DNA of 64,000 nt, from positions 21,390,001-21,454,000 of the forward strand of contig NC_087246.1 in assembly GCF_037042905.1 (NCBI RefSeq), written 5' to 3'. The DNA is from Lytechinus pictus. Lineage: Eukaryota. A program made the position numbers and the translations under genes. Below the pieces are notes generated by a model that worked only from the letters and a program-made list of their open reading frames with translations, made no database searches and had not been told where the DNA came from. Below, one piece after another: positions 28,156 through 52,284 of the stretch. Positions within the stretch are counted from its first letter, which is position 1. Each line of letters opens with the position of its first letter.

Positions 28156-29781
28156 CCACTATAAAGCAGACATGGCCGTGAATGATTCCAGCAAAGATAT
28201 TACTAAATATGGTCCAAATATATAGGTTTTTCTTCATCTAACTACTATGCTTTTTCTAATGACATTTTCTGCGCAAATCATTTAAAAATATCTGGAATCT
28301 CCCCCCCCCCCCCGATAATCAAACTTTTCTACGTGCAAAGGTATGTAATCACCAAGCCGTCTACAAGAAAATGGCGTCATGCAGAAACCTTTAAGGTGAG
28401 CAGTCCGATAAAGCACATTTTCAATGTTCTCAATTTAGTTGTTCTAACTAAAATATACAGCTAGTAAGCTGTTACAATGAATGAAACTGGTATAGTTGTA
28501 TTTTGCACATGACTGATTTTTTTAATCGTACACTTACAATAAGATATTAGAGGGTTCAAAGTCACATATTGATGTAAATAGTGAGTGATTGCCATGTGAG
28601 GTAATATGTAACCAGTAGAAAATCGGGGATTTCGGTGTCGAGTACCGTCAGTATAGATTAAGGAACACTGGAGCAATAAATTCATCATATTACTGCTCGT
28701 GTTCTTTCAAATGGTTAAATGTTACTGAGTGTTCGGGTGGTATCGTCGTCCTTTCCGGGATGCCTACAAAATCGTCTTCAATAGTTATTACAATATTTTC
28801 TAACACTGTGTGAGTAAATTTAATATTGATTTGATTTATGTAGTCTAATTTTCTATTCTAAGATATTAAAATTCATGGATGTATGTAATTTCTTTCAGTG
28901 AACGACTAGATCAAATCAAATCAAATCAAATCAGACTAGATAGGCGTACATCAGTCTGGTCATGATGCATATACAGGTTCATAATAATTATACAGGCATA
29001 TAACCGCAAGTCTCGAGACGTTTGGGCCCTGATGTTCATAAAACTTCTACCAATAATGTAATCGGGGAAGGGGAAGGGTCGCTCTCTTTTCTATCGACGT
29101 ATCCGCAACCGCGTTCAGAAAAGGCGATGAGAATTGTCATTTTCCAGCACATGGCGTCATCGTTGTCTTTTTGGACAACGAGATTTATTCTTTTTCAACG
29201 CCGTTGATCGGCAAACATCCCTTAATATGGTAGGGTAGGCCTTCTATACTACTTCATTAACAAAAACAAATTTGTTATATATCGGTCTTGGTTATTGGGA
29301 AAATAATTCATGATGAAACGTTATACTTCATTTTCTCGAGGTTGTGTATTTCTCAAGTTTCAATGAAAAAGATGCCAAGGAATATTGTGTATCAAGAGTA
29401 AATATTATTTTATTATAAAAAAAATATGTATCAAATGATTAGAATGGCTAGTTGATTGTTTTGCTTAAGAGTTCAATGGTTTAGTTAGTAGAGTGGTGGT
29501 CTCGCAATCCGGGTTCAAAAACCAGTCCGTGCGCTGAGGCCCTTTGGTAAGTCATTTATCCACATTACTAGCAGCATGCACAGAGAAATGACACTGCCAA
29601 AGTTCTCACATCTATCCCATATTTATTTTAATTTCATGATGTTAGCTACATGCAAAGCCTACACAAACATGAGGTATAGATGCGATCATAATTGTATTAA
29701 CAATTTTCTGAAAGTAGCACACTTTTAGTTTTTTTAATTAACAATGAGACGTCGATTATCTCTTTTGTTATCTAGAATCGG

Positions 29782-31293
29782 ATGCAAAAGATGGCATCAT
29801 CGAAACAACTATCAGATAGTCTAGAATGTCCCATCTGTCATGATCTACTCTGCAATCCTAAACTTCTGCCATGTTCACATTCTTTTTGCACAAGTTGTTT
29901 GACCGAACTTCACTCTTTTCAGCAAGCTGATTCCGGGTTAACTTGTCCAGTGTGTCGCCAAAATGCAAATGTTCCTGGAAATGATGTGAGTAACTTTCCA
30001 ACAAATCTTATTGTCAAGTCCCTCGTCGAAGATTTAAAGAGAAGGTCTGATGCTAAGGCCGAGCGTATAAAAGGGGATGGAGCAACCGCCATTCAAACTT
30101 GTACGGTTTGTGATGGTGATGAACAAGACATTGCAACCTACTACTGCCAGAACTGTTCAGAGTTCCTTTGTGAAGATTGCTTGCAACACCACAATAGATA
30201 CAAGCGGAATGCATGCCATGAGACTGCGAAAGTAATAGATATTGTGGCGGGAGTTGTCAAAAAGAAATTCACATGCCCTGAACATCCACAGGAACTGCAG
30301 CAGTTCGTGTGTACTACATGTCTCGTTCGGATCTGCTGCAGATGTCGGGAGGTCGAACACAAGGAAGGTGGACATGAAGTCATCGAGATAACTGGGTATG
30401 AAAAAAGTCAGCAAGAAAAAATAGAACGTCTTTTACTGAAAATAGAGCAAACATTTGTTGACATTCCAAATGACTTATCTTCTGTTAATGAGAAGCTTCG
30501 AACAGTGAAAAATGTTATGTCCCAACGACGACAAGAAATCATAAATGCTTACGACAACGCAGAAGAAATATTGCAAAGAAAGAGAAATGAATTATTCGAA
30601 GAATGTAGTACGCATGAAAAAACATTCTGTCAGAAGTTGGAAAATATCATTGGGTGCTATTATGACTTCATAGAGACCTTTTCTGAAAATGTCACGCTTG
30701 TAAACGAGGGGGCAAGAAGTCTACACCTACCAGACCAATCACTGGCTGAGCATACAACACGAGTCAATGAGCTTGAGAGAAGTCTCAAAGCTGAAGCCCT
30801 CTCACCACTTCTTGCTCAGGCATCAAACGTAGTACTCCGAGCAGAATCGATTGTTTTTCGTCCGGCTGATCATACCATTGATCTTGGTACAGTTCATCAT
30901 CAACTTGAAGTGGAATTGGAAGATTCTATTTGTGAAGTAATCTGCATGGCTTCAACGGTAGAGGATACTCCCGAAAAGAAAGACGTGGAAGATCTTCATT
31001 CAACCCATTCTTCTGTATTTAAATTCATGGAGCCCGAATCAAAATCCCTTCCAGACAGTGATGATGACATTCTTGACTTTGATTTTTATCTTCGTGATCT
31101 TCATGATCTAACCCGCATAACTGAACAGTTGGAACGAAACAAATTGTCCGTTGACACGTCTGATCTTTCTGATACCAGTATATCTGACACATCAGACGTG
31201 TCCGCGCGTCCGGAAAGTAACAGAAGTTCAAGGCGTTCTTTTTTTGCAAATCTGAAGGCTCGATTACGATCCGGGACTGGAGACCAATCTTGA
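29782..31293 (+). CDS. TRIM/RBCC protein, type B copy 1
   Basis: RING, two B-boxes, coiled coil and acidic D/S-rich tail. Acceptor TTATCTAG ends at 29775, 6 nt before the ATG. Confidence 0.93.
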   Translation: MQKMASSKQLSDSLECPICHDLLCNPKLLPCSHSFCTSCLTELHSFQQADSGLTCPVCRQNANVPGNDVSNFPTNLIVKSLVEDLKRRSDAKAERIKGDGATAIQTCTVCDGDEQDIATYYCQNCSEFLCEDCLQHHNRYKRNACHETAKVIDIVAGVVKKKFTCPEHPQELQQFVCTTCLVRICCRCREVEHKEGGHEVIEITGYEKSQQEKIERLLLKIEQTFVDIPNDLSSVNEKLRTVKNVMSQRRQEIINAYDNAEEILQRKRNELFEECSTHEKTFCQKLENIIGCYYDFIETFSENVTLVNEGARSLHLPDQSLAEHTTRVNELERSLKAEALSPLLAQASNVVLRAESIVFRPADHTIDLGTVHHQLEVELEDSICEVICMASTVEDTPEKKDVEDLHSTHSSVFKFMEPESKSLPDSDDDILDFDFYLRDLHDLTRITEQLERNKLSVDTSDLSDTSISDTSDVSARPESNRSSRRSFFANLKARLRSGTGDQS

Positions 31294-31533
31294 GTCCCTA
31301 ATTCTCAATAATTAATAAGTTTCAGTATTATATGTGTTGGTGTTAACGAGATATCATGTAGACTACTGCCACTGGACATGTGGCGAGATCAAGATGGACT
31401 AATGTCACGAATGAGGATAATCTATTATTTGCATCTGACCACGGAATTAGAGTGCTTACGTTGTTATTGCATATGTGTTGCAAATTGGAGCATATCTGCA
31501 GTTGGAAAACGAGACATGGCTATGACACCTGGT

Positions 31534-32097
31534 CCGGGGGGCCACTTCCATTGACAAGTGGATAACATGCGCGACCAAAAAACACGTAAAAATGATGTCT
31601 TTTTCAAGATAGGGCACGTTACGTAAGTAACGTAATAAGGGTGTCAAAAACAATAAAATAATGAAAAAAGGGTATCTATTTTCGCTAGGAAAGTTACGTG
31701 TTTAGGGTCAAATTTGCGAGGGTGTAAAAAATTAAGACTAAAATGTTTTATAAAGGATGTACTTTTTGCCCTAAGAGTCAACACTACGTGTTTAGAGTAC
31801 GATTATCGCGCGAGACGTGGGAGATGGGGCTGTACTAAACCCAATCAGGTAAAGGTAAACCGACGACCGACGACAGTGACATAACAATAAAAATATCGTT
31901 GTACTTGTTTAGGGGTTCAATTCAGGGAATACTTGCCAAGAGAATTGTTTTGTTTCCAATACTTGTTAAGGGTAGGGTTTCACACACCAATACTAAGGGT
32001 GCATTTTCAGAATATGGAAAATACGTGTTTAGGGTGATTTTTGAGACCCCATGGTCGCGCATGGTATCCACTCGTCAATGGAAGTGGCCCCCACGGG
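31534..32097. mobile_element. MITE with CCGGGGG termini (paralog at about 49596-50156)
   Basis: TIR CCGGGGGGCCACTTCCATTGACAAGTGGATA / TATCCACTCGTCAATGGAAGTGGCCCCCACGGG, with flanking direct repeat CACCTGGT. Confidence 0.85.
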
Positions 32098-34152
32098 CAC
32101 CTGGTTCTAACTATCGAACTAGTTTACCTCGGATATCTATTGACGTTATCACTTGAGACATTGTTTTCGCAAACTTGGTAAATAAAATAAAATATGTTTC
32201 ATGGATAATCTTGGGGAAAATAATGCAACACGTACCCGTCGATAATTAATTTTCAATCCTACTTCTTTCATATATGGATACTATTCAGAAAACAGACATT
32301 GGAATACTTGTAACCATGTAAATTCTTAACATTAAAAAAAGTGGTAGGACACTCGAAAGTGGATTAATTGACAACCTTTCGGAAAGTTGAATAAGGGACA
32401 AGGCCTTTTCGAGTAAGAAAAAGCGTGAAATTTTTTGAAATTCAGTAAATCGATACGTGTATATAAATGTGAATATATGTCGATCTCTCATTATTTTTGG
32501 GGAAACCATATATATTAACAAAAACATTTATTGCTTCGGAATAAAATGTACATTTCCCCCAAATTCATAAAGATTAATTGAATGAAAGGTGAGAGGAGTC
32601 GATAGCATTAGTGATCGCATTTGAATGTACCACCACGGTTATAAACATTACAGATAAATGCATAAAATCAAAGAATTTTCTTACAAATATCTGTTTTTTT
32701 TTGTAAATTAACAATTTGTTCTCCATTTATCTGTATAAATTCTTGATATCAGTAGGTATTTTATTTTCCGAGACGTCATCATGGTTACTGCTGCTGTTTC
32801 ATGACGGGATTTTTTTTAATCATCATGTATACTGTATAAGTAATTATAATTTGTATGAGGTCCACACGTTGGCCTAACAATCAGGCACAGATCCAGCGGA
32901 GGGTGGTACAAGATACAAGTATTTTATATTTTCTCAAAATTGTGAATTTCTTTTCAAATCTAAACATCACTCATTTTAAAGAAATGTTATTCACTTGTCA
33001 AATTTTGAGCGAGAACAATTCGTGGTAATAGGTAGTTTTCGCGCATTTAAAACTCTTTACAACGCATCGATTCCTTTGAAAATGAAATTAAAATCAAAAT
33101 GAGGCTTTTGTCGAAAGTTAATTAAATTATAGAAGTTTTGATAAATTTTTAAATTACAATTTTTTCAAATATTGATTACAAAAATGATACTATATTCATT
33201 ATTTATGCTATTACGAAGTAGGAATTATCGACTTTTACAGCCATTAATGAAAGAAAATGTATGATTACAACGTTAGACTGAAAGGTTGCCTAATAAACGA
33301 GGGTATCACACGTATATCATAAGAATTATAGTGAATTTAACTAATAGCAAATTTTATTGCCTTTTATTTTAAAGTATGTATGTATAAAACTTTTATGATC
33401 AGTAAACATACATTAAGGGTGGCTTGGATTGACCTTATAGCGTCTCCGTCCTATTGTAGTTTTCCATCCTTTTGCAGTCTTGTACGTGAAATGAAAATGA
33501 ACTTTACTTCACATACCCCATCTGGAAATTAGACCAAGCAGTTTTAGACCAAGTGTGCATAGACCACTCATGTCAAAGTCATATAACATCGTGAATATGG
33601 TAAAAGGACAAAATTCGAACTGCAAAAAATAAAATTAAAGGGAAAAAAGAGATAACGGCCTGGAATTATTTGCGTGAAGTCTCTTCAATTTCAAGGTTGA
33701 TTTGTTTTATATCATTGCCTTATTATGCTTGACGGAAACCACGACATTCCCAAAGACCTTTTTCGTCTATGTTCGGAAATGATCTTCGGATTCATAACAG
33801 TCATGTTCTGATTAGTTTGGATCTTTCATATTACAAACCATGTTCTTCCTTCGATGCTATAGATACACGATATTCATATTACTTAATCAAATGTGATATT
33901 GACATTGTATTGATGCAAACTCGCTTCAATAAAAGGCTATTGTAGACAGTATTGTGACAATCACATTCGTCTTTCTATTGAGGGTGTATTTATATTATCA
34001 ACGCTCGTTGATGTTTAGAATCAAGTTGCAAAGTAAACAACCCCTAATATTGTGCTGAAATGATGAGTATTTACAAATATAATTTCGCAATATAATCTGA
34101 GTTTATTTTCATCATGATTAAGATGATGATGATAATTCATATCATTATCATT

Positions 34153-34153
34153 T

Positions 34154-34198
<45 letters not shown>
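34153..34198. repeat. (TAG)n microsatellite (longer version at about 52203-52283)
   Basis: Direct reading. Confidence 0.95.
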
Positions 34199-34599
34199 GG
34201 CTATTCCATAAATTATTCATCCTTTTTGTACATCTGACCTCCATTTTTCTCATCTCTTCCTTCACTTCATAAACTGACCAAGTCGTGGCCATTTGACAGC
34301 ATTGCAGGCTGTCATAAGAACCAGAAATCAGAGACAGAAAATGTCACGAAGGGCTCACATACATGAAAATACACTTTTGTAAAATTGGAAAGATAGCTCA
34401 AGAACAATTCACAATTAAGTTTGATACTACGGTGTCTTTGCAAGAAAGCATCGCAGACTACATACAATCGAATGTTAACAAAATAGTGAAATAGTTCAAG
34501 TAAAATCGACTTGTCCGACGCTTCATCGAGCGAAGCCTTCTTCATGAACATGATGAAGTCAAGATCTCATACATGTCTTAAAGATTACGATCATCATTA

Positions 34600-35025
34600 G
34601 ACATAAGACATAAGACTCTCGCCTTGTAAGCAGAGGGTCATGTGTTCGAATCCCACCGCGGTCTGGCGTCCTTTGGCAAGGCGTTAATCCACACTTTGCA
34701 CTCTCGACCAAGGTGCGAAATGGGTACCCGGTAGGATGTGAAAGTCATTGTAGCTTGACCAGTACTGTGTGCGCCTTACCGGCGACTGACTGGAATATTC
34801 CCCAGGGAGTGGAGGATGTGCTAACATTGTGTGCGGGAATGACTGATTGAATCCGATGACCGGGGTAGTAATAATATCTGTAAAGCGCTTAGACACGTCG
34901 CGACGCGTCGTTCCGATGTATTAATCGCTATATAAAAGTGGATTATTATGATTAATATTATCATTATCATTATTATTATTATCATTATTATTATTATTAT
35001 TATTACCATTATTATTACTATTATA
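34600..35025 (+). mobile_element. tRNA-derived SINE with L2-like 3' end and (ATT)n tail (paralog at about 52645-53065)
   Basis: B box GTTCGAATCCC, CCTTTGGCAAGGCGTT, AAATGGGTACCCGG core, TGTAAAGCGCTT...CGCTATATAA and (ATT)n. Empty site at about 63060. Confidence 0.85.
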
Positions 35026-35532
35026 TGCTTCGCCTTGTTAAGATTTCGTCTTTTTATAATTTTCTGGCAGGTCTTGTTTGCTTCCTATGGTTTTTACTTG
35101 CTATCTTTTGCAACACGTTATGCTTTCTGAAAGTCCTCATTCCTGCATGCCCCAAACCGAATAACACAGTTGAAAAGGAAAAACAAAACGTTCCCCACAA
35201 TAGATTTATATTTTAAAAAGACGCAGGAAGAAAAAAACAGGAAAACAGGGCAATTCATTGTTCAAAAATAAGAATCTGAAAGAGAAGTACTCAGAAAATT
35301 CGTTTTGCCCAATTGATCGTGGGCCCGGCAGCCACTGCGGATGGGTTTATCTTTAACATGTAAGTTTCCTCATGTAAATATATTTGCATGGGCTGTCGCC
35401 ACTACGGACCGACATTCCATCACGCCGGGTGAATTTATTATCTATTGAACCAAAATATTTGAATTTTGAAAAAAATATCAATGCTTTGTTGCTTGATCAT
35501 CCCTGGATGATAGTTTGGGAGAACGGCTTTAA

Positions 35533-36122
35533 AGGACAAGTCCACCCCAGAAACTTGTTGATTCGAATAAATGGAGAAAAATCCAACAAGCATAACACTG
35601 AAAATTTCGTCAAAATCGGATGAAAATAAGAAAGTTATGACATTTTAAAGTTTCGCTTATTTTCACAAAACATTTATATGCACAACTCAGTGATATGCAA
35701 ATGAGAGAGTCAATGTTGTCACTCACTCACTATATCTTTTGTTCTTTATTGTCTGAATTATACAATATTTCATTTTTTGCAGATTTGACAATAAGGACCA
35801 ACTTGACTTAACCATAAACTGTTAAAATAATGGTAATTCCATATGTTCAGGGAAGAATAGAATATTGTTTCAAATGACAATGAGGAGCTAGAAAATTAGA
35901 ATTGTTCATATCTCATATAATAAAATACAAAAGAAATAGTGAGTGGGTGACGGCATCAGTCTGCTCATTTGCATACCGACCAGGATGTGTATTTAACTCT
36001 TTTGTGAAATTAAGTGAAACTTTCTTATTGTACATCCGATTTTGATGAAATTTCAGGTGCTATGCTTGTTTGACTTTTCTCCTTTTATTCCAATCAACTT
36101 TTTGTTGGGGTAGACTTGTCCT
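35533..36122. mobile_element. Kolobok-like MITE
   Basis: TTAA on both sides and TIR AGGACAAGTCCACCCCA / TGGGGTAGACTTGTCCT. Related copies at 53587-54062, 60281-60746 and 63588-end. Confidence 0.85.
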
Positions 36123-36188
36123 TTAAAGTCAACAATGATTTCTTTTGTGTCGTGCTAGACGGATTTCAAGCCCGCCCAGTAATTCATT

Positions 36189-36221
<33 letters not shown>

Positions 36222-36574
36222 ACCCAAATCAATCTCCCGAGAACCTGGATAAGTTCAAAGTTCAAAGTTAAATACAATTTAACAATTAATGGGTATGTGC
36301 CTTAATAAGGTAAGATTATAACCGATGTGAATTTCTGCGTGAAGTATTGACAACAGATTGAGGAACTCGGGGTTAATGAATCGTTCAAGCTGTGCCAAGT
36401 ATTAAAACACAACAGACTAGTGTCATAGGGTATAGGGAACTGCTTTGAGGGTACTGAATTTCCCGTTGTCCACCAAGGATACCTAAAGAAGAACGGCATT
36501 GATATCTCCAAAGTCTTTGCTAAAATCGAGTGACATAGCGTAAGTAGAATCTCTACATTTATTTCATTCAAATA

Positions 36575-38330
36575 TACCCCCATCTCACTAGATGGCGATT
36601 CCACTGCGATCGTCAAAAATCGACAAAGCGTGGTATAACGTAGCTTGATCGTGCCTTGATCTTTTCAATCTTCTCCGTCGTACCTTGATCTTTTCTGAAG
36701 CGGCAAGGATCGCCACCATCTTCCTGGTCGCCACAAAATTTTGAACATGTTCAAAACTTACGTAGCGAGATCGCGGAGGTGCTAAAGCGCATCACAATCG
36801 AGTCATGAGCGTATTACAAACGACATATTCGTAGCTGTAACGGAGCCCCAACGCATAAAGCGTAGTATAAGCGCATTAAAAGCGGCACCGATCGCCCGTG
36901 GTTTTCAGCCCGTTCCCAAGACAATTCTGCTACGCTGCTTCCGTTTACAAGGCGACTGCCTTGCGCTCGACACGCTTCACACAGCTTCCACCACGACGCT
37001 TCCTTCTTTGGGTGGCATGTGGCACACGTTCTCAGCCCGCTACAGGCGTTCGCGTTGCGCTTTTGCTGCGCCGCTGATGACTGGGCAGCGATTGCACAAC
37101 AACCGTCCGCGCTGCTATAAAACGCCGTGCCGATGGTGGCGGATTATCATATTTGCAACAGATTACGAGGCGATACCACGGCGTTTTCAAACATACCTCC
37201 TAGAAAAAGGACCAGAAAAGGGAAAGCTGCCCAAGCTATATACCCCTCTTAGGCCGGCGGTCGAAGAGGAAGATCAAGGGGTTATGGTGGTGGTAGAGGA
37301 GGAGGAGGTAGAGGAGGAAGAGGAGGGGGTACAGGAGGAGGATGAAAATCTTACTGCTGAGCCAGCTGGAAAGAGAAAAAAAGACACTCACATGTCTTGA
37401 TGACGAAATGGGTTACCTCTGCAGAAATAAATAAATTGATTATGTTTTGAAAATAAATTGAATTCTAACCACAGTGACAGTAGACAACATCAAATTTTGT
37501 TAATGATTCGATCACGAATGTATTGATTGGGAAATGCAATCTTTAGGGAGATTCTGGCATTGTGCCCCCCTCCCCCTCCCTTTTTATGAGTGCTCTCACA
37601 TCAGTAGACTACTTCTTGTCAGCAAATTTGAAAGGAATTTACCAAATATTTTTGAGTGACAAACTTTTGTGGAAAAAAATAAACAGAATATCAAAGATTT
37701 GTATGCTCTTTTATGAAATTCTGGATGCATCCCTCATATTAACTATTAGGCTCATCGACATCTTTTGAATGAAATTTTAAAAATATTGTATATTATGACT
37801 TAGGTGACAGCCAGGATCGGACCCTGTATCTTTTTGGCCTCCTCCTTGTCCTGTCCTCGCATTCAACTTTTAACTGATGTTCTTTTAGAATGCCAAGATG
37901 TATAAGTCCAACCAAATTCTGGACATCCATGTTGGTCGGAGGTTGGCAATCGACTGAAAAATGTGTCATGTGCCGCGATTAGTATGCCGATTGCTTGAAA
38001 TCGTTTCAAGAGCCCATCATGAACGTAACATAATCGCTTCATTCGTAGCACCACCGTACCGAGGTCCTAATTAGCGTATGAGCCTCGTTGTATGATCGCT
38101 TTGATCGCAGAAGCAGCGCATCACATCTGCCTCGAATCGTCGCAAGAAAGTGGCATCGTCGTACTTTCAGCGTATTACCATCGCCTTCAGCGCAGGTCGG
38201 TCGCATAGAAGTTGCAGTGCAATCGTCTCGCAGGCTAAAAATAGAATTCGAGGAAGATTCTGCTACGATTTGCGGGATTTACACAGATCGCCATGGTCGC
38301 CACGATCGCCTTCCTAGTGAGATGGGGGTA
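36575..38330 (-). mobile_element. Internally deleted PIF/Harbinger-like transposon
   Basis: 17-bp TIR TACCCCCATCTCACTAG / CTAGTGAGATGGGGGTA. Absent at the paralogous site near 54510. Carries a transposase N-terminal remnant. Confidence 0.8.
37700..37930 (-). pseudogene. Decayed Harbinger-type transposase N-terminus
   Basis: 37930-37793 reads MDVQNLVGLIHLGILKEHQLKVECEDRTRRRPKRYRVRSWLSPKS*, then broken DEPNS..NMR/MHPEF. This resembles the RRRxxWVRxWL...DPxxFxNYLRM pattern of Harbinger transposases. Confidence 0.5.
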
Positions 38331-38867
38331 TTATAAGGTAGGCCTACTGTAATTCATGGATGAATCGCATTTCTTTAATGTATGAATATAATAGGCTTAC
38401 TAGCATCACAATGCGATTCACAGGTACATATTGACCGCCACAAAATTTTCAGTCATTTTGATCCTTGATTATGAAATGTATCATGAAACTCATGCCAATA
38501 TTCAATCCGTGGGTGGGGCCGAGCAGATGGGATGTAGATGACCATGCAAAAAACAATCCACAAATATATAGCAAGATGTTGATTTTTACGTTTTGTAAAC
38601 GTTTATTGGAAAAAGTGCCCCTTCCCGATTTCGCCGACTCTGTTCAGAAAACAAGCAAATGGATCATTTCATCTTTCACCTCGTGAAGTACTTTGTCCAT
38701 TGCACTCATGAACATAATTTGTATACTATTTAATGATGATGTCATTGTAATGAACATTATATCTGGACAGGTTGGATTCAAATCTAACGAATTATAGATT
38801 TTGAAATAACACTCATCTAAAATTAGCAATGGAAATATTGTCTCTTTAATTTGTTGTCTAGAATCGG

Positions 38868-40376
38868 ATGGCTTCAGCAAGGCAACTCTCAGACCATCTA
38901 AAATGTCCAATCTGCCATGACCTACTCTGCAATCCTAAACTTCTGCCATGTTCACATTCTTTTTGCACAAATTGTTTGACCGAACTTTACTCAACTCAGC
39001 AAGCTGATTACGGGTTAACTTGTTCAGTGTGTCGCCAAGATGCAAATGTTCCTGAAAATGATGTGTGTAACTTTCCGACAAATCGAGTAGTCAAGTCCCT
39101 CGTCGAAGATTTCAAAAGAAGATCAGATGCTAAGGCCGAGCGTATAAAAGGGGATGGAGGAACCACCATTCAAACTTGTACGGTTTGTGATGGTGATGAT
39201 CAAGACATTGCAACCTACTACTGCCAGAACTGTTCAGAGTTCCTTTGCGAAGACTGCTTGCAACACCACAATAGATACAAGCGGAATGCATGCCATGAGA
39301 CTGTGAAAGTAATAGATATTGAGGTGGGAGTTGTCAAAAAGAAATTCCCGTGTCCTACACATCCACAGGAACTGCAGCAGTTCGTGTGTACCACATGTCT
39401 GGTTCGAATCTGCTGCAGATGCCGGGAGGTCGAACACAAAGAAGATAGACATGAAGTCATCGCGATTGCCATGTACGAAGAGAATCAACATGAGAAAACG
39501 GCAATTATGTTGGCGAAAATTGATGAAAGAGGTGTTGATATCAATAATTACTTGTCTGTATTGCAGGAGACGGGTCAAAATGTAAAAAGTATCATTTCTC
39601 AACGACAGCAAGAAATAAAAATTGCTTACGACACAGCAGAAGAACAATTGCGAGGGAGAAGAGATGAATTGCTCAATGAATGCAGTAATGATGGTAACAA
39701 ATTCTATCAGGAATTGCAAGAAAAAGAAGAATGCATTAATACATTTCTAGGAGCTGTATCTAATCGGGCCTCGCTTGTGAACGATGGCCTGGGAAAACTT
39801 TATCAACCAGATCTGTCACTCGCTGATCATGCAGCACGATGGGGTGATCTTGAAAGTTTTCTCATGAATGAAGACATCTCCTCACTTCTCGCTCAGTTAT
39901 TAAACATACGACAGCGTGCAGAATCTTTGACCTCCCGTATGGCTGCTTCTACCATTGATCTTAGCATTGGTACTGTTCTCGTCAAGGACCATCGGCTGGA
40001 TGGAGAACCAAAGAGTAGTGATGCGATAGCGATAGCTCCGAGGAAAGGGGATACTATTTTCAAGAAGGAAGCCTCCGATGACCTTGTTTCACATCCTTCT
40101 ACGTCGACAAACGTAACCTCCCAAGCAAAGCCCACTTCCGACAGTCAAGCTCCTTATGAAAGTCCCTATGATCGTCTTGATCTTGGAACTCTAGAAAGGA
40201 AAATAGATGATTTACAGGCCAGCATGGCTACCAGTACGACTCCGACAAACGAAAGCCATTCTTTAAATGAAGAACTCAGACGGACCTCCGAGTGTCCGGA
40301 TATTAACAGGGCTAGTGTTCGTTCTCGCTTTTTAAATCTCGTCGGACAAGGTAAGCGGAAGGCTCGTATCCACTAG
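38868..40376 (+). CDS. TRIM/RBCC protein, mosaic (C-type upstream region and start, B2-like linker, A-type body)
   Basis: Start MASARQLSDHLKC resembles 55583, KGDGGTTIQTCTVCDGDDQ is identical to B2, and from CPTHPQEL onward it is almost identical to A. Acceptor ends at 38861. Confidence 0.93.
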   Translation: MASARQLSDHLKCPICHDLLCNPKLLPCSHSFCTNCLTELYSTQQADYGLTCSVCRQDANVPENDVCNFPTNRVVKSLVEDFKRRSDAKAERIKGDGGTTIQTCTVCDGDDQDIATYYCQNCSEFLCEDCLQHHNRYKRNACHETVKVIDIEVGVVKKKFPCPTHPQELQQFVCTTCLVRICCRCREVEHKEDRHEVIAIAMYEENQHEKTAIMLAKIDERGVDINNYLSVLQETGQNVKSIISQRQQEIKIAYDTAEEQLRGRRDELLNECSNDGNKFYQELQEKEECINTFLGAVSNRASLVNDGLGKLYQPDLSLADHAARWGDLESFLMNEDISSLLAQLLNIRQRAESLTSRMAASTIDLSIGTVLVKDHRLDGEPKSSDAIAIAPRKGDTIFKKEASDDLVSHPSTSTNVTSQAKPTSDSQAPYESPYDRLDLGTLERKIDDLQASMATSTTPTNESHSLNEELRRTSECPDINRASVRSRFLNLVGQGKRKARIH

Positions 40377-40655
40377 CGTATATATATACCTAAGGGGGGG
40401 GGGCAGGGGGGGCAGACTGCCCCCCTGACGAGTTACAACTCATGCAGGGCACGTATCCCTGCCCCCCTGACGAGTCACAACTGATACAGGGGACGTGCCC
40501 CCCGCCTTTTGAGAAACCAAATTACTAATTTGTAATGTAAATTTGAACCTGAAGACCTTTTTTTTATTTTTATTTTTTACTTGTTTAATTTTTCCGCGGA
40601 CGAAATATCCTCCAAATAAATTCCCCCCTTCTGGAAAATCCTGGGTACGCCAGTG
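40371..40655. mobile_element. hAT-type MITE inserted in the last codons of the third TRIM gene
   Basis: TIR CACTAGCGTA / TACGCCAGTG and 8-bp TSD CTCGTATC (40363-40370 and 40656-40663). Confidence 0.92.
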
Positions 40656-40963
40656 CTCGTATCCCTACTTTTAAGTTCTGACTTGAACTCGACCATTGAG
40701 TAGATTCCCAGTTTCGAACTTGACAATGGTTCTACCGATTTGTCAAATCGATCAGGCATCATCAAGCCACTATTGGACTTGATTGGTCTATAGTTCGGAA
40801 AAGTATGATCAATACACCTTGATCGGGTCGATCAACAATTAGCAGGCTCAGGCCTCATATTCGACTATTTTAGGACAGCATAGTTACCACTGCCGAAATG
40901 ATTACTCAATCAAGCCCATTCACCATTTTCCGTTCGATCGGTTGTCATCGGAAGTTGGACCTG

Positions 40964-41140
40964 GGGGCCGTTTCATAAAGCTGTTCGTAAGTTAAGAGTG
41001 ACTTCAAGGACGACTGGTGATCATTTCTTGTGGTAAGTGATATTTACCATTTGGTGGGTATTTAGCGCGTAAGAAAGGTTCACCAGTCGTTCTTAAAGTC
41101 GCTCCTAACTTTAATACGAACAGCTTTATGAAACACCCCC
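40964..41140. mobile_element. Harbinger-type hairpin MITE
   Basis: GGGGCCGTTTCATAAAGCTGTTCGTA... / ...TACGAACAGCTTTATGAAACACCCCC, with CTG duplicated in a CCTGG context. Confidence 0.8.
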
Positions 41141-41293
41141 CTGGTCGGTAACCAACATCGGGCCAATCTTCCTTTGCTGCTTGGACATCACTCTGTTTTC
41201 TTACACTAATATATTGAACATATCATAAATATTTAAATAGGAAAGGGCAGTGTAAACGCTGAAGACAGGATTAACCAGCAAGGGGGAGGGGAC

Positions 41294-42612
41294 CAATGGC
41301 GGATCCAGCTTTTGTCAGTAGGGCGGAAAAGGGATTTTTCGCCCACATTTTCCTGATGGCCACTTAAAGCTATTCTTTGTCGTTTTCCTTTTAGGGGGTA
41401 TTCATAGCTAAAGACTCAAAGTTTATTCTTACGAAGGTAAGGTATCTCAAAAAGCTTATAAATGATGCGAGCGCGAAGCTCAAACCAAGCTCATTTTTTG
41501 TTATGTATTCAAACCTTTAAACTTAACATTCTAAGCAATTTATCAAATAATGATCAAGATGCGTATCTAATTTAACGAACAATGCGAGGTCGAAGCGGTA
41601 TCTTAAATTTTCGATAAATTGACCTGAAAAGGAACCTGTATGGGAGTGTTTGCAGTTGCTCATGAAGAGGATTCATATCTCACGTGTCGAGTAATGGAAG
41701 CGGGAAGCGCGAGCTGAAAATGTTTGATATAAAAAAAAAACTGGACAGTTTACAGCACTGATTCTTTTTTTTTTAGATTTAGACCTAAAAACGGAACATT
41801 CTAAGCATTTTTGTTTTTATCTTGATCAGGATATAATCAAATAAATTTATTGGTGAGAGCACGAAGCGCGATCTGATAATGTTTGATATTCCAACCTGAA
41901 AAACTCGACAGTTTAAGCACTCATTTAGATCAAGACGTGTATTTCAATAAAACGAGCATGAATACTGGGATGATTTTTTTTAATAGATTTATTCCGAAAC
42001 TGGGCATTCTTTTCACTTTTCGTAATCATGAAAAGAACGGGTGTCTCCTAAATAAATGATGCGAGTTTAAATTTTGGGGATTTAGACCCAAAACGGGAAA
42101 TTCTAATCAAACTTTGTTAATATTAGACATGATGTGTATTTAACTTAACAATTATTGTGAATGCAAAGCGATAATAAATATTTAATATGGGCCTTCTGAC
42201 CTAGAAAGGTGACGTTTCATGAACTGTTTTGGGGAATCCATGAAGAGGATACGCATCTCGCTAATCAATTAATGCTAGCGCGTAGCGCGAGCTGAAAATT
42301 GTTTATATTTAGCACTTTTTTAAATGACATAAACAAAAAGAAAAAGAAATGGACAAATCGAATTGCGAACATATTGAAATATTTGTACTTATTTACTTGA
42401 AAACAAGATAATTTAAGTGACTTAATTGTTTGAATATCCTCTTGAGCAGATAATTATCTCACTCAAGGCAATGAGAGAGCGAAACGTAAGCGAAATTTTT
42501 ATTATAATGACCAGATTTTTATATTTTCCAATTATTTCCCTCACCTTGTTTCTTCCTCGTTTTATCTTTTTAATCTTTTTTACCCTCCATATCCATCCTA
42601 GATCCGCCTCTG
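41294..42612. mobile_element. Old hAT-like element (only its right part survives in the first copy, at 19886-20723)
   Basis: Termini CAATGGCGGATCC / AGATCCGCCTCTG and internal GCGAGCGCGAAGC-type repeats. No clear TSD. Confidence 0.65.
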
Positions 42613-43857
42613 ACCACAATTTATTGCATATAATGAAAAATATATTGTATTTTTGTGTACTCTTTTAGATTTTAAAGCTGGGCAATTCCATAAAATGATA
42701 AACCTTTTTGTACGTCCGACCCCCATTTTTCTCAAGTCTTACTTCCCTTCATAAACTGACCAAGTCATGGTCAATTAGAGAACAGTACAGACTGTCAAAA
42801 GAACAAAAAATCAGAGACAAAATGAAACATACAGTAAGCCTTGCAATTAATAAATTAATACATTTTCAACAGACCGCTGGCCTGCTTCTTGTTTCAACAT
42901 CTATAAATTAATCTACTAGAGTAAAGTTGCAACTGAAATTTTTAATTGATTGCAAATGTTTTTTGCAATCAATTGCAAACTGACATAATTACGATGAATA
43001 ATAGATACAAAAGAAAAGGGAAATGTCAGCAGTATAAGTCGTAGTAACTGTCGCAGTAGTTACTACTTAGTTATGTAATTGGATATATTTTTGTAATCTT
43101 ATAACGGTGTGTGTGTGCAGGTATTTATCCTAAAACACGAGTGGTATCCCAATTTTATTGAATATAGCATAGAAAGGATGACAATGTATATAGCATATTT
43201 AAGACAAACATTTCATGGGTAAAAGGTGAAATTTTAAGATTAGTAATATAAATAGATAAATGTTCTGTGACTTCAAGTCAATAATTCTGAGGTAAAATTT
43301 AGAGGAAAATGACAAATTATCATTCAATGACATGCAGTTTCTGATGGAATATTTACACAGGTGAAATCGACTCCTGGGCCCCGTCTTACGAATAGTTACG
43401 ATTAATCCAATCAACCACAACTATGGATAGCCAGCAACGTCAACATCTGAAATACATGTTTGTTCAAAATATTTTGTAGATATGATGTATATTCATACAT
43501 TCACTGTTTTCTTGACAATATCCAGTATGCTTCTATTTTGTTTTCAAAGGACATTGAGCAAATTTCCTTAAAGAAATTATGACATTGATGGATTTCCATG
43601 TACCATGGAAATACATTAGTGTCATAATTTTTTATACAGAAAATTAGCCAAATGTAAACGAAGGAGAACACACCAAATTGTCAAGAAATCAATGAATATA
43701 TGGATATACATTCATATCTAGAAAATTTTTAAACAAACATGCATTTTATATGTTGACTTTGCTGGTTTTCCATTGTCGCGATAGATTGGAACAATCTAAA
43801 CTCTTTGTAAGACGGGGTCCTGAACAATCGTAACTCCTTGTATAAGACAGATTCCAG

Positions 43858-44015
43858 GGGAGTGTTTCATCAACATTTTCATCCGACAAGTTGTCAGATC
43901 TGACATCTTTCTCTGATGTTGATTGGCTGAGAGGTACTGTTTACTATGGTAACTGTCGGATAAAATGGGACTTGTCGGATAAAACGTCCGACAAGTCCTT
44001 TCATGAAACGCCCCC
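43858..44015. mobile_element. Harbinger-type MITE, present in only one duplicate
   Basis: TIR GGGAGTGTTTCAT / ATGAAACGCCCCC, CAG duplicated, and an empty site ATTCCAGGTTC at about 25603-25613. Confidence 0.88.
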
Positions 44016-47000
44016 CAGGTTCATCAAAGCTAATACGTTATTTTCAATTACGTCATCGGTCGATTTATAGTCGGTATCGTTAGTGTGACTGTGCCATACG
44101 TGTATAGAACTGGTAGGCCCTGAACTATTATAGATATAATTATATGCATGGTGTTACAGTATGATGAGGAATAGAGACAACAACAGCAACAACAAATTCA
44201 CAAAGGAAACACCTGCAGTTAAAAGTGGTAGTTATTGCTGTTGCGGTTACTGATTAGTTGTGTAATTCGATAGTTTTTAAACCTTAATCCGTATGGTCAT
44301 TAGCGACCATGCAATGACCATGCCAGTAATCATGATTATACAATGGGGAACGATTTAGCATATTAATGCGATATGAATTCATGATAAAAACGTTACATAT
44401 AAAGTCAGTAATTTTTAGGTGTATTTGAGAGGAAATATGCCAAAGTTATAATTGACACATTGATGATATAATTCATGAAATCTTTAAAGTTACGAGACAT
44501 GAAAAGCTTCCTTTCCACTTTCAATAATTGCATTTAGATACTACGAATAAATAAAATTAATAAAAAAAAATTATGTTATATGATTGTACTTCTAGAGTTG
44601 CACTGTATGAATTGGCGCATACACATGGGTATCGTAAGTATATGATAACACAATTTATTGCCTTTCAATTGACATAGTGAAATACAATTTTATGCAAATA
44701 CGATGATACGACTTTTTGTGATCAGTAAACATACAATTAAAGGTGTCTTGCAATTTACTAATACCGTCTTCGTCATATCGCAGTTTTGATTTCTTTTGCA
44801 GTCTTGTATATGAAACGTAAATAAACTTCCCTAAATGAAACCAAAAAAAAACCACTCATGCCAAGCTCATACCAACATGAATAAGATTTAAAAAATACAA
44901 CATTCGAAAATATACAGCCTTCACAGGAGTATTGAAGAAAAAAAACTTACGGGAAAATAAATAAGAAATGAAGAGAGAGGGGATAACGGCCTTGAATCAT
45001 TTGCGGGAAGCCTCTTTAATTTCAAGGTTGGCTTATTTTATATCATCGCCTTATGATTGACGAAAACCATGACATTCCTAAGACTAGTCTTCTTCAATCG
45101 TATGTAATCATTTCATTTCAAACACGTCCTGATCAGTCTTAATTTTTTAACCATGTTCTTTTCTCCATGCTAATCATTTCGTAAATTATGTTATCTACCA
45201 ACTGCACAACATGTCTACCATTGTCATGTTTCAGGCTCTACGTTATTTTAGTTGCTAATAATGATAATCGTTGATATTGATGATGACTTTAATCAAACGG
45301 TCCTTGGTCTTGTCTGAATGATTTTCTAAAATGATTATGTATGGCAGAGGTACCACACACAGTCAACGAAAAATTTGGCAACTTTATCAGATTATCATGA
45401 TTTTGTAATTTCAAACAATACTATTTTGTAAGATTCTAACACGAATTTTATCACATGCATTTCAATAACGGCGCTTACCAATGGTAAGAAAATCACGAAA
45501 TTGTGTTATTTTCTTTGTAATTATGATTGTTTGTCATACGATGCTTTTTAGTTATGTTTTATTCAACTTGTTTTATAATTCGCCGTATTCCAAAATTCAA
45601 TTTTTATGACATAATTATTCATTCTCACTTACGTGTGAATTGTGAAGAAAAATAAATCATGTATCGCCCAAACATGATTATTGCATTCTAAAACTGCTTA
45701 CATAAGCTCCTGATTCCACATTAGAAAGGAAAACGTTAGTGCACAAAATAATGCTGTGTAACGGTCAAAAACATCATTCACTCATGTAGTCACCTAAAAT
45801 AGACAGACTTTTCATTGTCATCACTGATAGATAGTAACTGCGTCTTCGAAGTATTTTATTTTCACTGGTTATCAGTAAACTATTTTGCTGAATAAACACT
45901 CATTTCGTGAGCATCGCAAATGGGTTTTGCATTGCGCTTCTCAACAGCTCCAATTCTATGACGTCATCGTATGTCAAAAGAGTTTACGTGCATTTTGTAT
46001 GCATTTTTTTTCTTCTTGATTTCGATATTTATTTTCGATTTTCCCTTTTATAAACGAATGCACACCTAGTTACTAAGAGAGCATACCGCATTTCCATTTA
46101 TTTGCATGTAGGATAAAAGAGCACTGTCGATTAAACGCCTTGCTCACGTCACGGGCATAGCTGACATGGGGATCGAACCCCAGCCTTTCAAACGTGTATT
46201 CATGCGCCTTAGACCGCTCGGCCACGGTGCCACCTCCACAATAAAGCAGACATGGCCGTGAATGATGCAAGCAAAGATATTACTAAATATGGTCTAAATA
46301 TACAGGTTTCTCTTCATCTAATTACTAAGCTTTTTTAAATGACATTTTCTGCGCAAATCATTAAATAATATCTGGAATCCCCCCCCCCCCCGATAATCAA
46401 AATTTTCTACGTGCAAAGGTATGTAATCACCAATGCAGAAACCTTTAAGGTGAGCAGTCCGATAAAGCAAATTTTCAATGTTCTCAATTTAGTTGTTCTA
46501 ACGGAAATACACAGCTAAGTAAGCTGTTACAATGAATGAAACTGGTATAGTTGTATTTTGCACATGACATATTTTTTTAATCGTACACTTACAATAAGAT
46601 ATTAGAGGGTTCAAAGTCACGGATTAATGTAAATAGTGAGTGATTGCCATGTGAGGTAATATGTAACCAGTAGAAAATCGGGGATTTCGGTGTCGAGTAC
46701 CGTCAGTATAGATTAAGGAACACTGGAGCAATAAATTCATCATATTACTGCTCGTGTTCTTTCAAATGGTTAAATGTTACTGAGTGTTCGGGTGGTATCG
46801 TCGTCTTTTCCGGGATGCCTACAATATCGTCTTCAATAATTATTACAATATTCTCTAATACTGTGTGAGTAAATTTAATATTGATTTGATTTATGTAGTC
46901 TGATTTTCTATTCTAAGATATTGAAATTCATGGATGTATGTAATTTCTTTCAGTGAACGACTAGATCAAATCAAATCAAATCAAATCAAATCAGACTAGA

Positions 47001-47835
47001 TAGGCGTACATCAGTCTGGTCATGATGCATATACAGGTTCATAATAATTATACAGGCATATAACCGCAAGTCTCGAGACATTTGGGCCCTGATGTTCATA
47101 AAACTTCTACCAATAATGTAATCGGGGAAGGGGAAGGGTCGCTCTCTTTTCTATCGACGTATCCGCAACCGCGTTCAGAAAAGGCAATGAGAATTGTCAT
47201 TTCCAGCACATGGCGTCATCGTTGTCTTTTTGGACAACGAGATTTATTCTTTTTCAACGCCGTTGATCGGCAAACATCCCTTAATATGGTAGGGTAGGCC
47301 TTCTATACTACTTCATTAAAAAAATTTGTTATATATCGGTCTTGGTTATTGGGAAAATAATTCATGATGAAACGTTATACTTCATTTTCTCGAGGTTGTG
47401 TATTTCTCAAGTTTCAATGAAAAAGATGCCAAGGAATATTGTGTATCAAGAGTAAATTGTATTTTATTATAAAAAAAATATGTATCAAATGATTAGAATG
47501 GCTAGTTGATTGTTTTGCTTAAGAGTTTAATGGTTTAGTTAGTAGAGTGGTGGTCTCGCAATCCGGGTTCAAAAACCAGTCCGTGCGCTGAGGCCCTTTG
47601 GTAAGTCATTTATCCACATTACTAGCAGCATGCACAGAGAAATGACACTGCCAAAGTTCTCACATCTATCCCATATTTATTTTAATTTCATGATGTTAGC
47701 TACATGCAAAGCCTACACAAACATGAGGTATAGTTGCGATCATAATTGTATTAACAATTTTCTGAAAGTAGCACACTTTTAGTTTTTTTAATTAACAATG
47801 AGACGTCGATTATCTCTTTTGTTATCTAGAATCGG

Positions 47836-49356
47836 ATGCAAAAGATGGCATCATCGAAACAACTATCAGATAGTCTAGAATGTCCCATCTGTCATGATCT
47901 ACTCTGCAATCCTAAACTTCTTCCATGTTCACATTCTTTTTGCACAAGTTGTTTGACCGAACTTCACTCTTTTCAGCAAGCTGATTCCGAGTTAACTTGT
48001 CCAGTGTGTCGCCAAGATGCAAATGTTCCTGGAAATGATGTGAGTAACTTTCCAACAAATCTTATTGTCAAGTCCCTCGTCGAAGATTTCAAAAGAAGGT
48101 CTGATGCTAAGGCCGAGCGTATAAAAGGGGATGGAGGAACCACCATTCAAACTTGTACGGTTTGTGATGGTGATGATCAAGACATTGCAACCTACTACTG
48201 CCAGAACTGTTCAGAGTTCCTTTGCGAAGATTGCTTGCAACACCACAATAGATACAAGCGGAATGCATGCCATGAGACTGCGAAAGTAATAGATATTGTG
48301 GCGGGAGTTGTCAAAAAGAAATTCACATGCCCTGAACATCCACATGAACTGCAGCAGTTCGTGTGTAGCACATGTCTGGTTCGGATCTGCTGCAGATGTC
48401 GGGAGGTCGAACACAAGGAAGGTGGACATGAAGTCATCGAGATAACTGGGTATGAAAAAAGTCAGCAAGAAAAAATAGAACGTCTTTTACTGAAAATAGA
48501 GCAAACATTTGTTGACATTCCAAATGACTTATCTTCTGTTAATGAGAAGCTTCGAACAGTGAAAAATGTTATGTCCCAACGACGACAAGAAATCAAAAAT
48601 GCTTACGACAAAGCAGAAGAAATATTGCAAAGAAAGAGAAATGAATTATTCGAAGAATGTAGTACGCATGAAAAAACATTCTGTCAGAAGTTGGAAGATA
48701 TCATTGGGTGCTATTATGACTTCATTGAGACCTTTTCTGAAAATGTCACGCTTGTAAACGAGGGGGCAAGAAGTCTACACCTACCAGACCAATCACTGGC
48801 TGAGCATACAACACGAGTCAATGAGCTTGAGAGAAGTATCAAAGCTGAAGCCCTCTCACCACTTATTGCTCATGCATCAAACGTAGTACTCCGAGCAGAA
48901 TCGATTGTTTTTCGTCCGGCTGATCGTACCATTGATCTTGGTACTGTTCAGGTCATGGATCATCAACTTGAAGAGGAATTGGAAGATTCTATTTGTGTAG
49001 CAACCTGCATGGCTTCAACGGTAGAGGATACTCCCGAAAAGAAAGACGTGGAAGATCTTCATTCAACCCATTCTTCTGTATCTAAATTCATGGAGCCCGA
49101 ATCAAAGTCCCTTCCAGACAGTGATGATGACATTCTTGACTTTGATTTTTATCTTCGTGATCTTCATGATCTAACCCGCATAACTGAACAGTTGGAACGA
49201 AACAAATTGTCCGTTGACACGTCTGATCTTTCTGATACCAGTATATCTGACACATCAGACGTGTCCGCGCGTCCGGAAAGTAACAGAAGTTCAAGGCGTT
49301 CTTTTTTTGCAAATCTGAAGGCTCGATTACGATCCGGGACTGGAGACCAATTTTGA
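47836..49356 (+). CDS. TRIM/RBCC protein, type B copy 2
   Basis: Near-identical to 29782-31293 but 3 aa longer (TVQVMDHQ versus TVHHQ). Acceptor ends at 47829. Confidence 0.93.
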   Translation: MQKMASSKQLSDSLECPICHDLLCNPKLLPCSHSFCTSCLTELHSFQQADSELTCPVCRQDANVPGNDVSNFPTNLIVKSLVEDFKRRSDAKAERIKGDGGTTIQTCTVCDGDDQDIATYYCQNCSEFLCEDCLQHHNRYKRNACHETAKVIDIVAGVVKKKFTCPEHPHELQQFVCSTCLVRICCRCREVEHKEGGHEVIEITGYEKSQQEKIERLLLKIEQTFVDIPNDLSSVNEKLRTVKNVMSQRRQEIKNAYDKAEEILQRKRNELFEECSTHEKTFCQKLEDIIGCYYDFIETFSENVTLVNEGARSLHLPDQSLAEHTTRVNELERSIKAEALSPLIAHASNVVLRAESIVFRPADRTIDLGTVQVMDHQLEEELEDSICVATCMASTVEDTPEKKDVEDLHSTHSSVSKFMEPESKSLPDSDDDILDFDFYLRDLHDLTRITEQLERNKLSVDTSDLSDTSISDTSDVSARPESNRSSRRSFFANLKARLRSGTGDQF

Positions 49357-52219
49357 GTCCCTAGTTCTCAATAATTAATAAGTTTCAGTATTATATGTGT
49401 TGGTGTTAACGAGATATCATGTAGACTGCTGCCACTGGACATGTGGCGAGACCAAGATAGACTAATGTCACGAATGAGGATAATCTATTATTTGCATCTG
49501 ACCACGGAATGAGAGTGCTTACGTTGTTATTGCATATGTGTTGCAAATTGGAGCATATCTGCAGTTGGAAAACTAGACATGGCTATGACACCTGTCCCGG
49601 GGGCCACTTCCATTGACAAGTGGATAACATTCGCAACCAAAAAACACGTAAAAAGGATGTCTTTTTCAAGATAGGGCACGTTACGTAAGTAACGTAATAA
49701 GGGTGTCAAAAACAATAAAATAATGAAAAAAGGGTATCTATTTTCGCTAGGAAAGTTACGTGTTTAGGGTCAAATTTGCGAGGGTGTAAAAAATTAAGAC
49801 TAAAATGTTTTATAAAGGATGTACTTTTTGCCCTAAGAGTCAACACTACGTGTTTAGAGTACGATTATCGCGCGAGACGTGGGAGATGGGGCTGTACTAA
49901 ACCCAATCAGGTGGTAAACCGACGACCGACGACAGTGACATAACAATAAAAATATCGTTGTACTTGTTTAGCGGTTCAATTCAGGGAATACTTGCCAAGA
50001 GAATTGTTTTGTTTCCAATACTTGGTAAGGGTAGGGTTTCACACACCAATACTAAGGGTGCATTTTCAGAATATGGAAAATACGTGTTTAGTGTGCTTTT
50101 TGAGACCCCATGGTCGCGCATGGTATCCACTCGTCAATGGAAGTGGCCCCCACGGGCACCTGGTTTTAACTGTCGAACTAGTTTACCTCGGATATCTATT
50201 GACGTTATCACTTGAGACATTGTTTTCGCAAACTTGGTAAATAAAATAAAATATGTTTCATGGATAATATTGGGGAAAATAATGCAACACTTACCCGTCG
50301 ATAATTAATTTTCAATCCTACTTCTTTCATATATGGATACTATTCAGAAAACAGACATTGGAATACTTGTAACCATGTAAATTCTTAACATTAAAAAAAG
50401 TGGTAGGACACTCGAAAGTGGATTAATTGACAACCTTTCGGAAAGTTGAATAAGGGACAAGGCCTTTCCGAATAAGAAAAAGCGTGAATTTTTTTGAAAT
50501 TCAGTAAATCGATACGTGTATATAAATGTGAATATATGTCGATCTCTCATTATTTTTTGGGGAAACCATATATATTAACAAAAACATTTATTGCTTCGGA
50601 ATAAAATGTACATTTCCCCCAAATTCATAAAGATTAATTGAATGAAAGGTGAGAGGAGTCGATAGCATTAGTCATCGCATTTGAATGTACCACCACGGTT
50701 ATAAACATTACATAAAATCAAAGAATTTTCTTATAAACATCTGTTTTTTGGTAAATTAACAATTTGTTCTCCATTTATCTGTATAAATTCATATCATCTT
50801 GATATCAGTAGGTATTTTATTTTCCGAGACGTCATCATGGTTACTGCTGCTGTTTCATGACGGGATTTTTTAAAATCATCATGTATACTGTATAAGTAAT
50901 TATAATGTGTATGAGGTCCACGCGTTGGCCTAACAATCGGGCACAGATCCAGCGGAGGGTGGTACAAGATACAAGTATTTTATATTTTCTCAAAATTGTG
51001 AATTTCTTTTCAAATCTAAACATCACTCATTTTAAAGAAATGTTATTCACTTGTCAAATTTTGAGCGAGAACAATTCGTGGTAATAGGTAGTTTTCGCGC
51101 ATTTAAAACTCTTTACAACGCATCGATTCCTTTGAAAATGAAATTAAAATCAAAATGAGGCTTTTGTCGAAAGTTAATTAATTTTAGAAGTTTTGATAAA
51201 TTTTTAAATTACAAAAAAGCTTTTTTTCTAATATTTATTACAAAAATGATACTATCATTATTTATGCTATTACGAAGTAGGAATTATCGACTTTTACAGC
51301 CATTGATGAAAAAAATGTATGATTACAACGTTAGACTGAAAGGTTGCCTAATAAACGAGGGTATCACACGTATATCATTAGAATTATAGTGAATTTAACT
51401 AATAGCAAATTTTATTGCCTTTTATTTTAAAGTATGTATGTATAAAACTTTTATGATCAGTAAACATACATTAAGGGTGGCTTGGATTGACCTTATAGCG
51501 TCTCCGTCTAATTGCAGTTTTCCATCCTTTTGCAGTCTTGTACGTGAAATGAAAATGAACTTTACTTCACATACCCCATCTGGAAATTAGACCAAGCAGT
51601 TTTAGGCCAAGTGTGCATAGGCCACTCATGTCAAAGTCATATAACATCGTGAATATGGTAAAAGGACAAAATTCGAACTTCAAAAAATAAAATTAAAGAG
51701 AAAAAAGAGATAACGGCCTGGAATCATTTGCGTGAAGTCTCTTCAATTTCAAGGTTGAGTTGTTGTATATCATTGCCTTATTATACTTGACGGAAACCAC
51801 GGCATTCCCAAAGACCTTTTTCGTCTATGTTCGGAAATGATCTTCGGATTCATAACAGTCATATTCTGATTAGTTTCGATCTTTCATATTCCAAACCACG
51901 ATATTCATATTACTTTATCAAATGTGATATTGACATTGTATTGATGCAAACATGCTTCAATAAAAGGCTATTGTAGACAGTATAGTGACAATCACATTCG
52001 TCATTCTATTGAGGGTGCATTTGTATTATCAACGCTCGTTGATGTTTAGGATCGAGTTGCAAAGAGGACAGCCCCTAATATTGTGCTGAAATGATGAGTA
52101 ATTACAAATATAATTTCGCAGTATAATCTGAGTTCATTATCATCATGATTAAGATGATAATGATGATGTTGATGATGATAATTCATATCATTATCATTGT
52201 GAGTAGTAGTGGTAGTAGC

Positions 52220-52284
<65 letters not shown>

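Follow-up and report, generated by a model that had tools for sequence, protein, structure and literature searches.

A mosaic TRIM-type gene at the junction of a tandem duplication in the sea urchin Lytechinus pictus

The 64,000-nucleotide stretch of Lytechinus pictus chromosomal DNA analyzed here, covering positions 21390001-21454000 and called the window below, carries a tandem array of TRIM-type genes. One of them, gene X, was confirmed as a mosaic of a C/D-type 5' end, a B2-type patch and an A-type body. The reading that we favor, with a probability of roughly 0.7, is that X is a real hybrid gene produced by homologous recombination, through a doubling of an A-B segment together with at least one further exchange.

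The genes of the array are of the RING/B-box/coiled-coil type and intronless. Five RING and B-box genes lie in the window, all on one strand and each in a single ORF (with a broken frame in C), in the order A-B1-X-B2-C, and a sixth gene, D, lies just past the window end. The sequence-only reading had proposed an array A-B-(C/A)-B-C with C as its last gene; the order of these five genes stood, but C is not terminal, since D follows it.

Gene A: 18405-19916, + strand; donor type of the X body, with a 1434-bp deletion at 19885, on a faster-evolving branch.
Gene B1: 29782-31293, + strand; delimited by its ORF and the self-comparison.
Gene X: 38868-40376, + strand; intact 502-aa RING/B-box1/B-box2/coiled-coil ORF, mosaic.
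Gene B2: 47836-49356, + strand; identical to X across 39126-39253.
Gene C: 55583-56939, + strand; C/D-type start; an additional A at 55847-55849 disrupts its reading frame.
Gene D: L003:1596-3071, starting ≈1.6 kb beyond the window end; C/D-type start.

Both genes that share the promoter type of X are broken in this assembly, C by its frameshift and D by an in-frame TGA that replaces the first Cys of B-box2 (L003:2064-2066), and X is the only intact ORF behind C/D-type upstream DNA.

In protein searches, the nearest relatives of the array proteins were TRIM-like proteins of L. pictus and L. variegatus. The A, X, B1 and B2 proteins are all recorded in NCBI for one 70.58-Mb L. pictus chromosome, and an exact look-up of the 502-aa X product matched the chromosome of this assembly only. 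The X RING, at residues 13-55, matched PF13445 (31.9 bits, cut-off 25.2) and PF00097 (27.8 bits, cut-off 21), and its Cys/His ligand pattern (C3HC4) is intact in the translation. The B-boxes matched PF00643 in two stretches (30.4 bits, cut-off 24.1), and residues 104-145 gave a match to PF22586 below its cut-off. X thus has the TRIM/RBCC arrangement of an N-terminal RING followed by B-box zinc fingers; the coiled coil is so labeled by its position and by the names of homologues, and the Pfam search of X returned no recognized C-terminal domain, such as B30.2/SPRY. By family membership, X is presumably a putative E3 ubiquitin ligase.

Self-comparison of the window revealed a direct repeat, 18413-36574 against 38867-54508 (A..B1 against X..B2), which bears out the tandem duplication proposed earlier. 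The duplication is direct, with a hybrid at its junction that has the 5' part of the distal gene and the 3' part of the proximal one. The repeat is interrupted by four features, one of which is a stretch of ≈510 bp found before C and D and missing before X. The other three are:

21390-25027, in the first copy only: LINE (non-LTR retrotransposon) with an intact ORF of 1046 aa at 21574-24714.
36575-38331, + strand: young TIR DNA transposon of 1757 bp in the spacer of the first copy, 537 bp before the X ATG, absent from the C and D copies.
40339-41773, + strand: X-only segment of 1434 bp, comprising the last 12 X codons (the ancestral tail) and 3' flank, deleted from A.

The LINE ORF encodes an endonuclease and a reverse transcriptase, and its empty site in the second copy is at 43280-43283.

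The two arms of the repeat have diverged to two different levels. From the A body to ≈34000 they differ by ≈2.5% (identity ≈97.5%), and through the spacer and the C-type upstream DNA by ≈7% (identity ≈93%), with a sharp step in identity at ≈34000/52240; counting substitutions, the spacer copies s1 and s2 are ≈93% identical, against ≈97.5% over the rest of the duplicated unit. The dS values were 0.044 for the A and X bodies (omega 0.31) and 0.025 for B1 and B2 (omega 0.76), which differ by 25 aa; between L. pictus and L. variegatus dS was 0.10-0.15. At the orthologous place, L. variegatus has the order P5-A'-A-B-D, in which no additional C/D-type gene separates B from D. This single A-B-D core places the doubling in the L. 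pictus lineage.

From its promoter to the end of its A-type body, X could be divided as follows:

38658-38954, + strand: D-like proximal promoter and first 29 codons; 9/297 differences to D against 31/297 to C.
38955-39125, + strand: RING core, in which D-, B- and A-type sites are finely intermixed; ≈8 substitutions occur in X only.
39126-39253, + strand: linker/B-box1 patch, a 128-nt run identical to B2, with B-type sites continuing to ≈39340.
39357-40338, + strand: A-type B-box2 and coiled-coil body, 96-100% identical to A and in an (A, X) clade.

These divisions rest on sliding identity, informative sites and trees. By sliding identity, 38331-38926 was 84-94% identical to C and had no homology to the upstream DNA of A or B, 39127-39275 was 99-100% identical to B2, and 39376-40339 was 96-100% identical to A; in 38955-39350, identity to A, C and D was 81-93%, and only B2 was close. 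At informative sites, X agreed with D over A by 30:1 in 38803-38926, with B2 over A by 18:4 in 39131-39345, and with A over B2 by 46:1 in 39346-39560; Fisher tests of the two switches between these intervals gave p = 7e-12 and 8e-19. The tree of B-box2 and coiled coil supported the (A, X) clade (95/94), and in the RING tree X grouped weakly with C and D. Altogether, at least three parental switches occur along X: C/D-type sequence gives way to mixed sequence, this to B2-type and B2-type to A-type. The ≈8 private RING substitutions come in addition, and a small A-type patch lies in the RING at 39066-89.

Most of the make-up of X read from the sequence alone held up in these comparisons. The motif by which the start of X had been linked to C was found exactly at 38851-38905 in X and at 55566-55620 in C, with 0 chance matches expected, and in D with 2 mismatches (L003:1579-1633). 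The upstream DNA and first ≈20 codons are thus of C/D type, as claimed, but D rather than C is closer in the proximal 297 bp. The match of the linker and B-box1 to B2 was upheld by both the identity values and the 128-nt run. The claim that everything from B-box2 onward, including all downstream DNA, matches A was correct for the body and failed for 40339-41773, which is absent from A. Every parental switch falls within the RING/B-box block, in agreement with the proposal that the RING acts as a recombination hub.

We considered whether the B2-like patch might be merely ancestral A sequence. This is partly true, as most of its states are common to L. variegatus A. At 39160 and 39165, X has the B2 state and differs from L. 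variegatus A. The linker of P0001, a second L. pictus protein of the A locus taken from an older annotation, is A-type; conversion from a B gene is therefore the better reading.

X is not the only mosaic in the array. Gene A has D-type and C-type patches in B-box1, and C has a B-box1 of A/B-type. The body of C is an old paralogue, sister to the pair formed by D of L. pictus and D of L. variegatus, although its upstream DNA is young. In P0001, a patch of the RING at residues ≈44-56, SDLEIRCPVCRQ, recurs in a more distant array member (P0008/P0128), which suggests that it may have come by conversion from genes 40-60 kb away.

The difference between A and X at their 3' ends could be polarized. 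The tail of X is common to L. variegatus A and to P0001, which shows that A carries a deletion and rules out an insertion of the 1434-bp segment in X. L. variegatus DNA also aligns into the X-only segment, which is single in the genome, embedded MITE-like repeats aside. The deletion in A, at 19885, replaced its last residues. At most body sites that differ between A and X, X has the ancestral state shared by L. variegatus A and P0001, and A is derived; in the tree, the terminal branch of A (0.017) is about five-fold longer than that of X (0.0036).

The DNA before X belongs to a spacer/promoter module present in three copies, before X, C and D. Two parts of the X copy flank the TIR transposon:

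34154-36574, + strand: spacer s1; its paralogues lie ahead of C at 52240-54508 and ahead of D from 62892 past the window end.
38332-38657, + strand: C/D-type distal promoter segment, 88% identical to C (54516-54851) and 87% to D.

K2P distances among the three copies were 0.06-0.12 (X-C, 0.062-0.089), compared with 0.17-0.20 to L. variegatus; judged by these distances, all three copies are younger than the split between L. pictus and L. variegatus. The closest pair shifts along the module, from X-C in the distal part to C-D in the middle and X-D over the final 210 bp together with the first codons. After 38657 (-210), X is without ≈510-557 bp that are found in C, in D and in L. variegatus D. 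The transposon has terminal inverted repeats and TA flanks, and the corresponding sites in C and D are empty. At least 40 genomic copies were found at 95-100% identity, the best of them, on another chromosome, at an identity rounded to 100%, and the family looks recently active; a 130-aa acidic ORF inside the element (37008-37400) had no Pfam match. Short MITE-like repeats, some in inverted pairs and with very many genomic copies, occur at 38658-38730, 40387-40657, 40950-41150 and 42622-42818; contig depths over them were in the thousands in all four of the public runs described below.

It had been suggested that X is an A-type protein placed under C-type regulation. That the C/D-type upstream DNA might drive X is something we can only infer, because the upstream DNA of X has lost the ≈510-557 bp and gained the 1757-bp transposon.

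We propose the following history, in which both the recombination mechanism and the order of events are inferred. The starting array would have had the order A-B-D that L. variegatus shows. The A-B segment would then have been doubled by homologous recombination within the conserved RING/B-box block, so that the gene formed at the junction combined an A-type body with a promoter and first codons of C/D type. The B-box1 patch identical to B2 and the D-like proximal promoter of X would stem from one or more extra exchanges, which would also account for a spacer and promoter of greater age than the remainder of the repeat. Two routes could have led there: another unequal crossover, between copies of the spacer, with loss of a gene and the step at ≈34000/52240 as its outcome, or gene-conversion tracts, some long and some short. 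If a single C x A crossover were the whole history, the arms would be of equal age and there would be one breakpoint; the arms have two ages and X has several switches, so at least one more exchange is needed, which makes at least two homologous exchanges (crossover and gene conversion) in all.

A wider and rather unlikely interpretation is that the spacer, C/D-type promoter and first codons form a cassette that recurrent exchange in the RING/B-box block has put before different TRIM bodies. The bodies observed behind it are A-type in X, old and divergent in C, and D-type in D. If this were true, the cluster would be permanently equipped to recombine regulation, RING and tail, and X, as the only intact product in the haplotype, would represent a promoter rescued onto a working body.

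For X-type sequence in other data, we compared the window with public Logan contigs of four runs; the contig depths given here cannot be converted to copy number. Run X1 had exact contigs for the X upstream DNA (38368-38654) and for the X body (39384-39970 and 40026-40327), the latter across 13 sites diagnostic between A and X. Its contigs at ≥95% likeness also covered the private RING of X, with no listed differences there, and the X-only 3' segment. Depths were similar throughout: 31.9 for the RING bin, 33.3 and 35 for the body, and 28.2 for the 3' segment. X-type contigs were present in run X2, from another study, as well, including a 129-nt RING contig with 3 differences. Run X1 also holds the A-type deletion joint, in which 40338 is joined to 41773, and a third haplotype in the 3' region, showing that it is not merely the assembly re-read. 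Over 38879-42708, X1 contigs span the gene and its 3' flank, and X14 and X15, sister samples of the same study, have none. With two sister samples uncovered over X, the data behave like RNA, and the contrast points to stage-, tissue- or condition-specific expression. X-type sequence is thus probably transcribed. Among the listed contigs, none bridges 38926-39357, from the C/D-type 5' end to the A-type body, because the B2-identical patch breaks short-read graphs. When the N-terminal 215 aa of X were compared with partial proteins of other assemblies, only S. purpuratus paralogues and one unrelated contig were found.

The first alternative to a real hybrid is an assembly artefact, in which two haplotypes of one A-B-(C)-D locus were joined within the RING/B-box block and X does not exist. 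The arms do diverge like alleles, with dS values (0.025-0.044) that the range of allelic divergence in sea urchins covers. Allelic differences between the old and new assemblies in neighboring genes were 11-12 aa per 460; P0003 lies 10 aa away from B2 and 22 aa away from B1, and the 25 aa between B1 and B2 are about twice the old-versus-new figure (10-12 aa), of the same order. P0001, with its A-type N-terminus and X-type body, has the appearance expected if a lone A locus had a second haplotype. For these clusters the older L. pictus annotation supplies a single A-like protein and a single B-like one, and run X1 holds both X-type and A-type (deletion) forms. However, there is no N anywhere in the window, and hence no gap at the junction, and the sequence shared across the putative join amounts to a few hundred bases at ≈85-100% identity. 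An overlap of a few hundred bases is too short for long-read assemblers. Furthermore, the spacer and promoter before X differ from the C and D copies by 6-9%, not ≈2.5%, and, wherever the join is placed, 38955-39350 is allele-like to none of A, C and D, so that a real conversion is needed whatever the assembly history. The private RING of X also occurs in the RNA-like contigs at about the depth of the X body, and no alternative copies are present on other contigs of the assembly. We consider a misjoin unlikely on these grounds. Literature searches found no description of this L. pictus assembly; the newer assembly may come from an inbred animal, which plays no part in the argument. The X locus is a caution for annotation, as the call rests on one putative junction in a very heterozygous species.

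Alternatively, with no crossover forming a junction at X, the gene could be an old C/D-type paralogue whose body and downstream DNA, to ≈52240, were overwritten by a long conversion tract from A..B1. Such a tract would fit the sharp identity step at ≈34000/52240, the roughly equal distance of the X upstream DNA from C and D, and the private RING changes, which suggest an older 5' end. It would, however, have to extend over 13-15 kb, with B2 already present after X, and L. variegatus lacks the additional C/D-type gene between B and D that this scenario starts from. We regard it as quite doubtful.

Finally, the single unequal crossover of the sequence-only reading, between C as the last gene and A as the first and followed by point mutation only, is very improbable: it accounts for the order A-B1-X-B2-C and for the C-type motif at the start of X, but not for the unequal divergence of the two sides of the junction, the closeness of the proximal 297 bp to D (9 differences against 31 to C), the several switches that include the B2-identical patch, the small A-type patch and the private RING changes, the non-terminal position of C, the mosaic nature of A and C themselves, or a C body that is an old paralogue behind young upstream DNA.

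Taking X as a real hybrid, with an A-B doubling and at least one further exchange behind it, the locus shows how tandem TRIM genes diversify: the bodies keep their orthology, and promoters, RINGs and B-boxes are swapped among neighbors. It also shows that a hybrid can stay the sole intact gene behind a promoter type, here with C frameshifted and D carrying a stop codon. L. pictus is genetically tractable and has laboratory lines, which makes the copy number, expression and function of X and A directly testable. The locus lends itself to teaching and can serve as a genetic model, and holds no surprise.

The orthologous cluster of L. variegatus contains a hybrid of its own. A' is a 510-aa hybrid at a 7.6-kb tandem duplication (CM031016.1, 46150905-46166055) with 98.5% identity, and is composed of an A-type 5' part and a P5-type 3' tail. 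Like X, it is a hybrid TRIM gene at a tandem-duplication junction; unlike in X, its breakpoint lies in the 3' part and not in the RING/B-box block, at non-equivalent codons (≈aa 443 in A, ≈aa 320 in P5), which indicates that the duplication arose by a different mechanism, probably a non-homologous one. An independent hybrid in the sister species indicates that hybrids recur in this TRIM cluster.

Teleost finTRIM/btr and primate TRIM5/TRIM22 clusters are lineage-specific TRIM expansions with gene conversion. The sea urchin array resembles them in its tandem, fast-evolving RING/B-box/coiled-coil genes, with dN/dS between recent array copies of up to 0.76, and in having a conserved N-terminal module and divergent C-terminal parts. 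It differs in that the urchin genes are single-ORF, have no recognized B30.2/SPRY domain, and are known here from their sequence, not as immune genes.

Unequal crossing-over in tandem gene arrays is well known from anti-Lepore-type hybrids and from CYP11B1/CYP11B2 chimeras. As in those cases, X is a hybrid lying where the two units of a direct tandem duplication meet, its exchange falls inside a conserved block, and it combines the promoter and 5' end of the downstream gene with the body of the upstream gene. In contrast to anti-Lepore, X has at least three parental switches, arms of two ages and mosaic neighbors. X has the architecture of an anti-Lepore-type hybrid that gene conversion has further modified, within a fast-evolving TRIM cluster. 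It is a plain instance of genes being shuffled through recombination between repeats, unexceptional and of a kind already known.
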